DNA of 64,000 nucleotides, from the NCBI RefSeq assembly GCF_020745735.1, contig NC_083408.1, positions 76,290,484 through 76,354,483 of the forward strand, written 5' to 3'. Within the stretch, counting starts at the first letter, position 1; every line of letters starts with the position of its first letter. A program made the position numbers and the translations under genes. Source of the stretch: Hemiscyllium ocellatum (Eukaryota). The notes under the pieces were generated by a model that was not told where the DNA came from, searched no databases, and saw nothing but the letters and a program-made list of their open reading frames with translations. Positions 22,001-26,100 of the stretch are shown here, one piece after another.

Positions 22001-22797
22001 ACTCAAAATGTAGTTCTGTCACTTTATATTTTAGCCTCCTGACTCTTTGCACAATTTCTGACTTAAATGTTGTATCTTGGTTAGCAGAACTGAACAGGAT
22101 TGCATTTTTGTATTTCACTGAAAGCACTCAGCAAGCCAGGAAGTACTTTGGGGAGGGAAGTACAATCTAGTTTACATCAATGACCTTTCATTGGAATTGA
22201 AAGATAGAGGTGAAGCATTTTTAAACAATTATGAAATTAAGCAAAAGAGAGCAGGGAAGGTATAAAACTGAAAAGTGACTGATAAGGTGGAAGAAAAGAG
22301 TAATTCGTTAACTAAATAGTATTGTATTGTGAATGGTCAGAAGAAAAGGGAAAATAGATGAAATCAGAGGATGTATAAAAAGAAAGGATAACAATAGGGC
22401 AGACGACTATGAATCTCAGTTGCATGAAGATAGATATTCAGAGTGCAGACTACAGCGTTGGCTTAACGTTAAGGCTGTGAAATGATGAGTAGAAAAATGT
22501 GGTGCTGCTCCTTAAGTCTCAATTAAATGGGACAATACTCAGGCAGCTAAGGACAACAAGGTCAAAGTGGAATAGCCAATTAAAGTAGCTAGTGACCTGA
22601 CGCTAAAACTGAGGTAACTAGCAAAGTCATGACAAGAAATCTGCCACAAAATTGGCAATTATACAGTTATCTCAGTGAGGTTGGGCAGAATACGTTTCAG
22701 AAAGCATTTTGTTCGTTAAATACTGAAATGAGCAGTAATTTGTCAAATCAACATTTTTTTCCCTCTCAAAAATAGTAAGGGGTGACTCGTGCTGAAG

Positions 22798-23148
22798 ATG
22801 ACTAAGAAACGAAGGAATGCTGGACGTGCCAAGAAGGGCCGTGGCCATGTCCAGCCTATCAGATGCACAAACTGCGCTCGCTGCATCCCCAAAGACAAAG
22901 CCATTAAGAAGTTTGTCATCCGCAACATCGTGGAGGCTGCTGCAGTTCGAGATATTTCAGACGCCAGTGTTTTTGATGCATATGTGCTGCCCAAGCTCTA
23001 TGTGAAATTGCATTACTGTGTCAGCTGTGCCATCCACAGTAAAGTGGTAAGAAATCGTTCACGAGAGGCCAGGAAGGACCGAAGTCCCCCTCTACGTTTC
23101 AGACCAGGCGCCAACATCCCAAGGGTACTCCCACCCAAACCTATGTAA
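22798..23148 (+). CDS. RPS26: Intronless 40S ribosomal protein S26 (eS26) retrocopy with intact ORF (116 aa), inside the BAG5 intron
   Basis: [29 protein letters not shown]...[19 protein letters not shown]...PPKPM. The Zn ligands C23/C26/C74/C77 and the YxxPKxYxK motif are intact. No introns, whereas canonical vertebrate RPS26 is multi-exon. Start context aagATG; AATAAA at 23173-23178. Confidence 0.93.
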
Positions 23149-26100
23149 ACAGTACCGGATTCTATTTGAAATAATAAAATTGTTGGAACACATTTTTTAA
23201 AAATCTTACTATTTCCAGTATAATCTAAAGGTTCTTTCAAATATCACTCCTATTAATCAGAAATTACAGCTGCAGTTCACTGGTGGTTTTGTTCATGGTT
23301 GGATTTTGGAATGATGTAAATAGCCATTGCTTCCCCATTAAGTAAGAGGTAGATGGAAAGGCCGCCGCTGAGTTTCCAGATTGCATTTGCATTTCTTTTT
23401 GCAGCTCTTATCCTGTGGCGTTGGCAAAGATTTTCAAGTAATTTTCATACTTGTCTTTTCCACTTATTTGTCACTTAGTGGTATTTGCTTTATTATGATA
23501 TCATCAGTGAAATAATAGAGCTGCTATGATCTAAATTGCCTAGCAACATAGAATTACGTTTGCTACATTCATATGTATAGCGTGCCTCAACTTTTGTTAG
23601 AAATCAATGCATCTTCACTCTGCAATAAATCTGTTTCCAAGGGCTTGTTTAAGGTTGCCCTTAAGCAGACATCACAGATCTGTAAGTCTTATCAATTTTT
23701 CTTTATTGGTGAGATGTAATTACTGCCAGCCAGGCCAGCATTTAGTGTCCATTCTAGTTTACTTTGAGAAAAGTGGTGTGGTGAGTTCCCTACTTGAACC
23801 TCTACAAACCATTTTGTGTAGGTACAGATTCAGACTCTTGTAGGGAGAATGTTTTGTGATTTTTGATCTAAAGATGGTAAAGGAATGGCAATATCTTTTC
23901 AAGTCAGGCTGCTGTATGACTTTGAGGGAAGTTTGCAGATAGTGTTGGGCGATGTTGTTGAAGAAGCTATGGCAAGTTGCAGCGATGCACCTTTTAGCTG
24001 ATATACACTACTGCCACTGTGCTCCACTGAATGGTTACGGTGACGGATGTGGTGCCAATCAAGTAGATTGTTTTTCATGATGCCAATCTTCTTGACAATT
24101 GGACAATATTCTATCATTCTCCTGACTTGTGCCTTGTAGGTCTTTGGGGAGTCAGGAGATGAGTTACTTCACAGAAGTGTTATTATGCAGAAGGAGGCTA
24201 TTTGGCCCATCCATCTGCACCAGCTCATTAAATGAGCATCATTACTTCTGCTTTTTCCCTAAAACCTTGTACAGTATGTTTATCAAAATAATCATCCAAT
24301 GCCCACATGAATTCCTCACTTGACACACAATTCCTGGCCTCTGATCTGTCACTGTAGCCACAGTATTTAATAACTTGTCCAGTTCTGTTTCATCTCAAAG
24401 GTAAACCCTGGGTTGGTATAGTGGGAAATTCAGCAATGGCAATGACTTTGAATGTGAAGGGAAAGTGGTTTTTCTCTTTGAAATGGCATTGCTGTGATAC
24501 TAATGTTACTTGCATATAGTGACTCTATCCATCAAGCGTTAGAGATTATGTAAAGCCTTTTGTTCTTGCAAATGACATTCAAAGTTTCCATGACTTAGCT
24601 GCTCTTTGTGATATTGGGCAATACAGCCAGAGAAACTCTCATCTCCTGAAACAGCTAGTCTCATTTGGGGCTGAAAAATGTGAATGATTAAACTTGCCCC
24701 CGATGTGTTGAATACCTTACTGCTTGTCACTTTCATGACCAATACAGCACTTAGACCTTTCATACCCATGGGATGTCACAAAGGGCTTCATAGCCAATGA
24801 CCTACATTTGAAATGTTGTCATTATTGTAGTATAGACAATTTGCACACCAAAGTTCCCACAATAGTAGCGATATGAGCAGCCTTATTATTGATTGAGGAA
24901 TAAATATTAGGTAGGACATTGGGATAATTTTCATGCTCTTTGAATTGTGCAGTGGGATGTTTTGTGAGATCTGATAATCTCAGATGAAGGCTGTGTTTAA
25001 CATCCTAGTGAAATGAAAATGCCTCCATGAGTATTGCACTGAAGTGGCAGCCTAAATTATGTATTGAAATCTCTCAGGTGTCAAGTCTTGAATCACATAC
25101 CACCCACCATAGGTGCAAGCATTACCAGCAAGTAAGCGACAGCTGACATGTGAAGAGGACAACAGAAATTGGATCCTGTCAATGGAACCATACTGCAGGA
25201 GTTTTAAATCTTTGTGAAACCCGAATACAGTAAACATATGTCAATTGTATTTATCATTTATTAGAAACTAAAAACAAGTGCTAAGGTATAACTTCAGAAG
25301 ATTAATTTTTGCTCTTTAATTGTTCATCATTATTGATGATGTTTGTGTCAAAGCAAAGCATTTATAGAATTTATTTTCATCTCAAAACCATAAAATAAGT
25401 GAGGATGAGGAATGCAATTTGGTTATCTCAATTGACCAGTGTAAAAAAATGAACAATCATACCACTCTACTCTCTTTCCTATTCTGACAAATATGTAAAT
25501 ATTTATAATTTTTTTTGCTACAAAGCATTGAGACTTGCTCTTTGTTTTTGATCTCTTAGTTCACTTGTATTTACACAGTAAACTTTGAAGTATTGATTCA
25601 GGTTTAACTTGGACTATTTAATAGCTTAGAGATTGGTGCTCAGTTGTCATGTTCAAACCTGAAGTGGCAAGATACTCCTACCGTTTCTCCTTCTGTTCTG
25701 TAACACTTGTGATTAACCTTGTGACTTTACTCAACAATTTCACAAAGTATGATTGCTTGAGTTAGAAACACCAGGATGTAGTGCGCCCAAGTATAGCCTA
25801 ACAAGAACTCCATAGCACGTTTTCAGTTTTACTGAAAATCATTGGCTGCAAGACATCCTCTAAAGATGAGGAAAATAATCAGAAGTTATGATTTCCAATG
25901 AAACCAGTGACATAGGTAGGAAAAGGAAGAGGTCCTGGACACAGAGATTTGTGGAATTCAGAAAAAATTAAAGTGCAAAAACTCAAAGAGGGTTGTCTCT
26001 AAGTTGTTTCCAGTACTAAATTCTGATTTTTTTAATACTTTTGTAGATGTGATACCACTGGTAAGGCTAGTATTTGTTTCCCATCCCAAACTGCCTTTGA

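Follow-up and report, generated by a model that had tools for sequence, protein, structure and literature searches.

In the present study, we analysed a stretch of 64,000 nucleotides (nt) from Hemiscyllium ocellatum (contig NC_083408.1, positions 76,290,484 to 76,354,483), here called the window, in which all positions are counted from the first letter. Intron 1 of BAG5 in this window carries, in sense orientation, an intronless copy of RPS26, the gene for the ribosomal protein eS26, and this copy lies between the CpG-rich promoter of COA8 and BAG5 and the coding exon of BAG5 (Table 1). A preliminary description of the locus, made from the letters alone, had mapped the shared promoter, a splice donor, the copy and the BAG5 exon; this map was right, with the first exon of BAG5 and its boundaries as elements that we infer from the sequence. 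The CpG island of the promoter (12000-12600; GC content 0.55, observed/expected CpG ratio 0.99) also contains the COA8 start codon (12154, minus strand), in agreement with the annotated start in Chiloscyllium punctatum (L001:1101). The donor of the putative BAG5 exon 1 is strong and lies about 10.4 kb from the copy. No CpG island was found at the copy itself, where the CpG ratio is 0.56 around the reading frame compared with 0.99 at the promoter, as the first reading of the locus had it.

The eS26 reading frame and its origin

The open reading frame (ORF) of the copy is intact from ATG to TAA over 116 codons. Its product matches the Pfam family Ribosomal_S26e (PF01283) over profile positions 1-103 of 108 (E-value 7.6e-54, 181 bits), and the zinc cysteines (CxxC ... 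CxxC; C23, C26, C74 and C77), invariant in the alignment of homologues, are all kept; the claims of a complete, intronless eS26 frame on the BAG5 strand and of intact zinc ligands were thus borne out. Compared with the parental proteins of sharks and rays, seven replacements are specific to the copy (N8A, V30I, E55D, T96S, P99L, G110V and P111L). The preliminary description had listed the first three correctly and had missed the other four, and the C-terminal tail that it called altered (GANIPR) is the ordinary eS26 tail of elasmobranchs. N8A amounts to three nucleotide changes. Among 147 homologues, the residues N8, V30, T96 and P99 are retained in 138-144, and E55D is also present in 15 other sequences. 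An exact protein look-up placed the product in assembly GCA_020745735.1, 8.7 kb upstream of a 448-residue BAG-domain gene, and the protein is recorded for the Hemiscyllium assembly in NCBI nr and UniRef.

The parental RPS26 gene has four exons in Stegostoma tigrinum (L002: 20620-48, 21493-21670, 21782-21912 and 23464 onward) and the same layout in Narcine bancroftii (L005), with exon 1 ending directly after the ATG in both. The ORF of the window is colinear with the spliced Stegostoma mRNA, and pieces of both parental untranslated regions (UTRs) flank it. The copy is a processed retrocopy of the multi-exon RPS26 gene. On the 5' side, the retained piece GTGACTCGTGCTGAAG matches exon 1 of both parents, in which a terminal oligopyrimidine (TOP) run, TTCCTCTTT, directly precedes the matching 5'UTR and a TATAAAA lies about 27 nt further upstream. 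An in-frame TGA (22783-22785) within this piece closes the frame upstream of the eS26 ORF. No similarity to the promoters of the Stegostoma and Narcine parents was detected upstream of the copy. On the 3' side, the AATAAA had been noted before, and it is inherited, since it lies in 3'UTR sequence that matches the parent. Parental homology stops at about 23191 and is followed by ATTTTTTAAAAATC, so that a poly(A) tail was not found, in line with the earlier statement; the tail may have been lost with age, or may never have been present.

The 5' junction is more complex. Neither the Stegostoma nor the Narcine parent has anything corresponding to the 14 nt at 22768-22781, and a 9-nt direct repeat, ACATTTTTT, flanks the copy. 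The earlier statement that no target-site duplication is evident passed over this repeat, which is a possible target-site duplication of uncertain weight, being short, of low complexity and diverged in C. punctatum. If ACATTTTTT were a true target-site duplication, the insert would begin at 22760 and the pyrimidine run would be the start of the copied mRNA. A canonical L1-type target-site reading was rejected because the junctions do not fit.

The parental locus of Stegostoma showed one further peculiarity. The RPS26 model "isoform X1" (L002:6001-23502) spans 17.5 kb; in it, the canonical ATG-only first exon gives way to a distant one upstream, which contributes about 20 N-terminal residues of unrelated sequence, and the Narcine X1 model is similar.

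Table 1. Features of the BAG5 intron 1 region in the window
Feature	Position	Strand	Remarks
eS26 (RPS26) ORF, intact and intronless	22798..23148	+	116 residues and TAA stop; profile match; 3/351 differences from the C. punctatum orthologue
Retained parental 5'UTR, 3' part, GTGACTCGTGCTGAAG	22782..22797	+	16 nt; its match in exon 1 of both parents (Stegostoma, Narcine) directly follows the TOP run TTCCTCTTT
Retained parental 3'UTR, about 43 nt	23149..23191	+	AATAAA at 23173-23178; alignment to Stegostoma parental mRNA; homology ends at about 23191
Direct repeat ACATTTTTT, upstream copy	22751..22759	+	9 nt; candidate target-site duplication; repeat family D7
Direct repeat ACATTTTTT, downstream copy	23190..23198	+	9 nt; diverged in C. 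punctatum
Pyrimidine run T7CCCTCTC, AAAAAT, then AG	22754..22775	+	Candidate 3' splice site, or TOP/TCT-like start, or parental TOP remnant; rank 168/1343
Putative non-coding BAG5 exon 1	12240..12336	+	In the CpG island, head-to-head with COA8; start 12240 is an arbitrary placeholder; donor GTGAGT from 12337
BAG5 coding exon	31529..32907	+	Acceptor AG at 31527-8; coding sequence 31561-32907, a single ORF of 448 residues
LINE 3' fragment split by a SINE-like insert (21425-21753)	20874..22000		Repeats confound the RNA word shares of the upstream flank

The orthologous copy in Chiloscyllium

The suggestion that the same retrocopy be sought in the syntenic BAG5 intron of other sharks proved fruitful, because C. 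punctatum has it between COA8 and BAG5 (L001:10010-10360), with an intact frame, all seven replacements and two further ones, G9R and R89L. The shared position indicates that the insertion is older than the split between Hemiscyllium and Chiloscyllium (family Hemiscylliidae), and the idea of an old insertion with a preserved frame is upheld: the copy is older than one species and intact in two genera. The annotated C. punctatum protein has 119 residues because of a G-to-A change at the position corresponding to 22789 (L001:10001-10009), by which a GTG three codons before the eS26 start became an in-frame ATG. This retrocopy protein is included in the older C. punctatum annotation, and the 116-residue form of this species was not found by exact-protein look-up. 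The sole large indel within 400 nt of the retrocopy consists of 42 extra bases in C. punctatum at window position 22417.

Upstream of BAG5 in Stegostoma and Rhincodon no S26 match was found in the fetched 10-kb flanks, which end at the equivalents of about 25020 and about 24340, 1-2 kb short of the site. The gene tables of Heterodontus and Carcharodon, which are uninformative on this point, call no S26e gene within 10 kb of BAG5. At the Stegostoma BAG5 locus (L003:1-21347), a gene call with a 103-residue product on the BAG5 strand covers the entire fetched locus and has no Pfam hit.

Constraint on the reading frame

Constraint was measured by comparing two species, with the H. ocellatum window set against C. 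punctatum, and the neutral reference was the aligned non-coding DNA of the COA8-BAG5 region, in which 680 of 15,437 positions differ (4.4%) and 80 indel events occur. Against this reference the ORF differs at 3 of 351 sites where 15.5 differences are expected (Poisson P=1.4e-4), and it contains no indels (1.8 expected), two non-synonymous changes (11.7 expected; P=6.6e-4) and one synonymous change (3.6 expected). None of the 12,923 neighbouring 351-nt windows has three or fewer mismatches, the mean being 15.4. The ORF is conserved at a level equal to that of the BAG5 coding exon, which differs at 10 of 1224 positions, all of them third positions. Divergence is close to neutral in the UTR pieces of the retrocopy and in its flanks, so that the conserved block is the ORF.

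The CpG dinucleotides provide an independent test. Of the sites that are CpG in at least one of the two species, 51% have changed in the DNA nearby, compared with 1 of 14 in the ORF (P=6e-4), and the CpG ratio of the ORF is 0.63, which is parent-like, compared with 0.18-0.26 in the intron. After the copy and the Stegostoma parent separated, the copy lineage accumulated about 8 non-synonymous and about 15 synonymous nucleotide changes. The comparison of non-synonymous with synonymous substitution rates (dN/dS) against the parent, proposed at the outset, gave a ratio of about 0.16, but one in which changes before and after the insertion are mixed. Taken together, the few substitutions, the few non-synonymous changes and the small loss of CpGs relative to the surrounding intron argue for purifying selection on the ORF as a coding retrogene. 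Gene conversion by the parent was rejected as the cause of the conservation, as the seven shared copy-specific replacements are spread over codons 8-111.

Representation of the locus in RNA

Transcription was assessed as the share of exact 31-letter words of the locus that are found in two small runs of the same species, X1 and X2, whose type was guessed to be RNA. Words from 22600-23400 have a share of 0.75 in X1 and 0.49 in X2, compared with 0.15 and 0.12 for words from 21600-22775, a stretch of which one third is sequence of short and long interspersed elements (SINE and LINE). The repeats, located at 21600-22000, confound the upstream comparison. Because runs of four other organisms hold similar shares of the upstream words, these words in X1 and X2 are probably derived from repeats, a view we hold with modest confidence; RNA coverage would then start near the copy and, in X1, run past the AATAAA. 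The parental mRNA cannot supply so many words, because by our count the Stegostoma parent shares only about one identical stretch of 59 nt with the copy. Some flanking sequence must also be present in RNA, because the X1 share exceeds the roughly 0.51 attainable by an exon at 22776-23195. From the far better representation of the locus than of the intron just upstream, we infer a discrete transcript for the copy.

An AG at 23403-23404, some 210 nt downstream of the copy, scores among the top five candidate acceptors of BAG5 intron 1. This site might mark an unannotated 5'UTR exon of BAG5, or might explain the RNA coverage past the AATAAA.

The repeats upstream of the copy were also compared within and between species. 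The LINE fragment is 79-85% identical to copies at 3051-3889, 40204-41659 and 55279-56092. The SINE-like element that splits it is about 330 nt long, and further copies were observed at 12908-13029, 14286-14424, 15658-15929 and 29325-29908. C. punctatum lacks the element at the corresponding site (L001 about 8920), which points to activity of this SINE since the split of the two genera.

The candidate acceptor upstream of the copy

The preliminary description had proposed a typical 3' splice site immediately upstream of the copy. The elements that it named are all there: the pyrimidine run T7CCCTCTC occupies 22754-22767, no AG occurs between 22739 and 22774, and the first AG follows at 22774-22775. 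This region is conserved in C. punctatum save for one extra C. The word "typical" did not stand, as five A's occupy positions -8 to -4, a T is found at +1 and, in a rough position matrix, the site ranks 168 among the 1,343 AGs of the intron, no better than chance, compared with rank 43 for the real BAG5 acceptor. The site lies 7 nt upstream of the recognisable boundary of the retrocopy, in sequence that is host intron or non-parental.

The putative BAG5 exon 1 contains one ATG, at 12272, which would open a short upstream ORF in either product. Splicing of exon 1 to 22776 would stop this frame at the TGA at 22783-5, leaving 12 nt to the RPS26 ATG, and splicing to 31529 would stop it at a TAG (31544-31546), 14 nt short of the BAG5 ATG.

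Discussion

The most likely reading of the copy in BAG5 intron 1 is a protein-coding retrogene for a variant eS26, one that arose from an RPS26 retrocopy held by purifying selection. The eS26 identity of the product, its nature as a retrocopy, the orthology in two genera and the constraint on the ORF sequence are the parts of this reading that the comparisons demonstrate directly, and the comparative data lend real support to the retrogene. Herein, we propose that the processed mRNA of a four-exon RPS26 gene would have been inserted in sense orientation into BAG5 intron 1 in an ancestor of Hemiscyllium and Chiloscyllium. Seven residues of the copy would have been replaced, including four at positions that hardly vary in eS26, and the ORF would then have been kept by purifying selection.

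Several observations weigh against a functional gene. The type of the two runs is a guess ("RNA?"), and because the locus lies in a transcribed intron, BAG5 pre-mRNA could supply the words. No transcript contig for the 116- or 119-residue protein is on record, the exact look-ups returning the genome record only, and no S26e gene appears in the 10 kb upstream of BAG5 in two gene tables, that of C. plagiosum and that of the newer C. punctatum assembly. N8A, V30I, T96S and P99L alter near-invariant residues, which fits relaxed constraint equally well as new function. The ratio of about 0.16 takes the Stegostoma parent as its reference and not the parental coding sequence of the same species, so that it combines evolution on both sides of the insertion. 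Between the two species, two non-synonymous changes stand against one synonymous change, and the resulting dN/dS of 0.61, obtained from three changes, is uninformative. Both non-synonymous changes (G9R and R89L) fall in C. punctatum; G9 is present in 143 of the 147 homologues, and position 89 is R in only 108.

Some of these observations would suit a neutral processed pseudogene that has stayed intact by chance, its low divergence reflecting a low local mutation rate or luck and its RNA words coming from BAG5 pre-mRNA. The mRNAs of ribosomal proteins yield many processed pseudogenes, two of the four hemiscylliid assemblies looked up lack a gene call for the copy in their tables, and the flanks at 22200-23700 are less diverged than average (about 2.9% versus 4.4%); the replaced near-invariant residues and the two-to-one count of changes point the same way. 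Nevertheless, we consider a pseudogene quite unlikely, because within about 15 kb of aligned non-coding DNA no 351-nt stretch is as conserved as the ORF, the UTR pieces of the same retrocopy have diverged almost neutrally together with the flanks, 13 of 14 CpGs are kept compared with 49% nearby, and neither lineage has gained an indel or a stop. The conserved sequence could also act as RNA, for example as a 5'UTR or regulatory exon of BAG5, or as a decoy for regulators of the parental RPS26 mRNA. The constraint was measured on the sequence overall, and three changes separate coding from non-coding constraint weakly; yet the conserved block coincides with the ORF and not with the UTRs of the retrocopy, and the retained CpGs are mostly in arginine codons, where their loss would be non-synonymous or give a stop. 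A role as RNA is consequently hard to credit, and we give it very little weight.

How the retrogene would be transcribed is a separate matter. As a sub-hypothesis compatible with the retrogene, the copy might act as an alternative last exon, with BAG5 exon 1 spliced from its donor after 12336 to 22776 and the transcript ending at the inherited AATAAA, so that RPS26-like and BAG5 mRNAs would be mutually exclusive products of the bidirectional COA8/BAG5 promoter. This route would suit a sense copy in a first intron that has a strong donor upstream and no CpG island of its own, and the pyrimidine run, the AG-free zone, a branch-like TAAT and the nearness of the AG to the retrocopy boundary are consistent with it. 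The TGA at 22783-5 would halt any upstream frame, including that of the ATG at 12272 if this lies in exon 1, and, provided that the upstream words derive from repeats, the word shares fit a 5' edge of the RNA near 22776. Furthermore, the capture of host 5' exons by intronic retrocopies has been documented (PMC4772013, PMC5750009). On the other side, the acceptor scores below the background-neutral value, with purines at -8 to -4 and a T at +1, the boundaries of BAG5 exon 1 are predicted ones, and the X1 share is too high for an exon limited to 22776-23195. We therefore propose this route only tentatively, as a somewhat doubtful one. Alternatively, as the preliminary description had also considered, transcription of the copy may begin within or close to the pyrimidine run itself, which would then be either a fortuitous TCT- or TOP-like initiator with an A/T-rich TAATTT (22736-41) about 25 nt upstream, or a remnant of the parental TOP run. 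The parental genes start in TTCCTCTTT, about 27 nt after TATAAAA, which resembles this arrangement, and a true target-site duplication at ACATTTTTT would make the run the first bases of the copied mRNA. However, neither parent has a counterpart of the 14 nt that separate the run from the recognisable 5'UTR, no similarity to the parental promoter is present upstream, the copy has no CpG island, and the ACATTTTTT repeat, diverged in C. punctatum, may be due to chance; an own start appears unlikely.

The retrogene proposed here can be compared with several known systems. RPL10L, RPL39L and RPL36AL are functional ribosomal-protein retrogenes of mammals. Like them, the shark copy is intronless, derives from a multi-exon ribosomal-protein gene and has an intact ORF under apparent purifying selection across species; unlike them, it concerns eS26 in hemiscylliid sharks, and expression, tissue pattern and incorporation into ribosomes are established for the mammalian genes only. 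Retrogenes are often testis-biased. Many "S26-like" entries occur among the homologues of the ORF protein, and processed RPS26 pseudogenes, which are common in mammals, share with the shark copy the parent family and the origin by retroposition. Whereas typical pseudogenes decay neutrally, the shark copy has an orthologue in a second genus and is set apart from its surroundings by far stronger conservation. With regard to the intronic position, 13 human and 14 mouse intronic retrocopies are expressed with upstream exons of their hosts, including a Taf9 retrocopy in Ak6 (Carelli et al. 2016, PMC4772013), and Utp14b is located in intron 1 of Acsl3 (PMC5750009). The shark copy resembles these cases in its sense orientation, its place in a host intron (the first, as for Utp14b), the absence of its own CpG island and the host promoter upstream. 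It differs from them in that chimeric transcripts were observed there, whereas the shark case is known from its sequence and its candidate acceptor is ordinary. Host-promoter capture by intronic retrocopies is a mechanism already known, and the comparative constraint on the ORF is the main new result of the present study.

A more far-reaching hypothesis is that hemiscylliids make a second, divergent eS26 from the COA8/BAG5 promoter through splicing of exon 1 to the retrocopy, and that this variant enters the 40S subunit and alters the selection of mRNAs. We consider this chain of steps very unlikely as a whole, and the idea of specialised ribosomes is speculation. The replacements affect the basic arm at the N-terminus, the surroundings of the first zinc knuckle and the C-terminal tail, which in eS26 contacts the mRNA, and eS26 belongs to a small group of ribosomal proteins for which exchange on mature ribosomes has been reported. 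To our knowledge, no selected eS26 paralogue has been described in any vertebrate. If the copy is only passively transcribed, it would merely be an unusually well-kept processed copy. If hemiscylliids do make a second eS26, it would represent a vertebrate eS26 paralogue coupled to the gene of a chaperone regulator. A conserved variant of eS26 in these slowly evolving sharks would offer a natural handle on ribosome heterogeneity, and the locus would also provide a clean non-mammalian example of an intronic retrocopy gaining expression.

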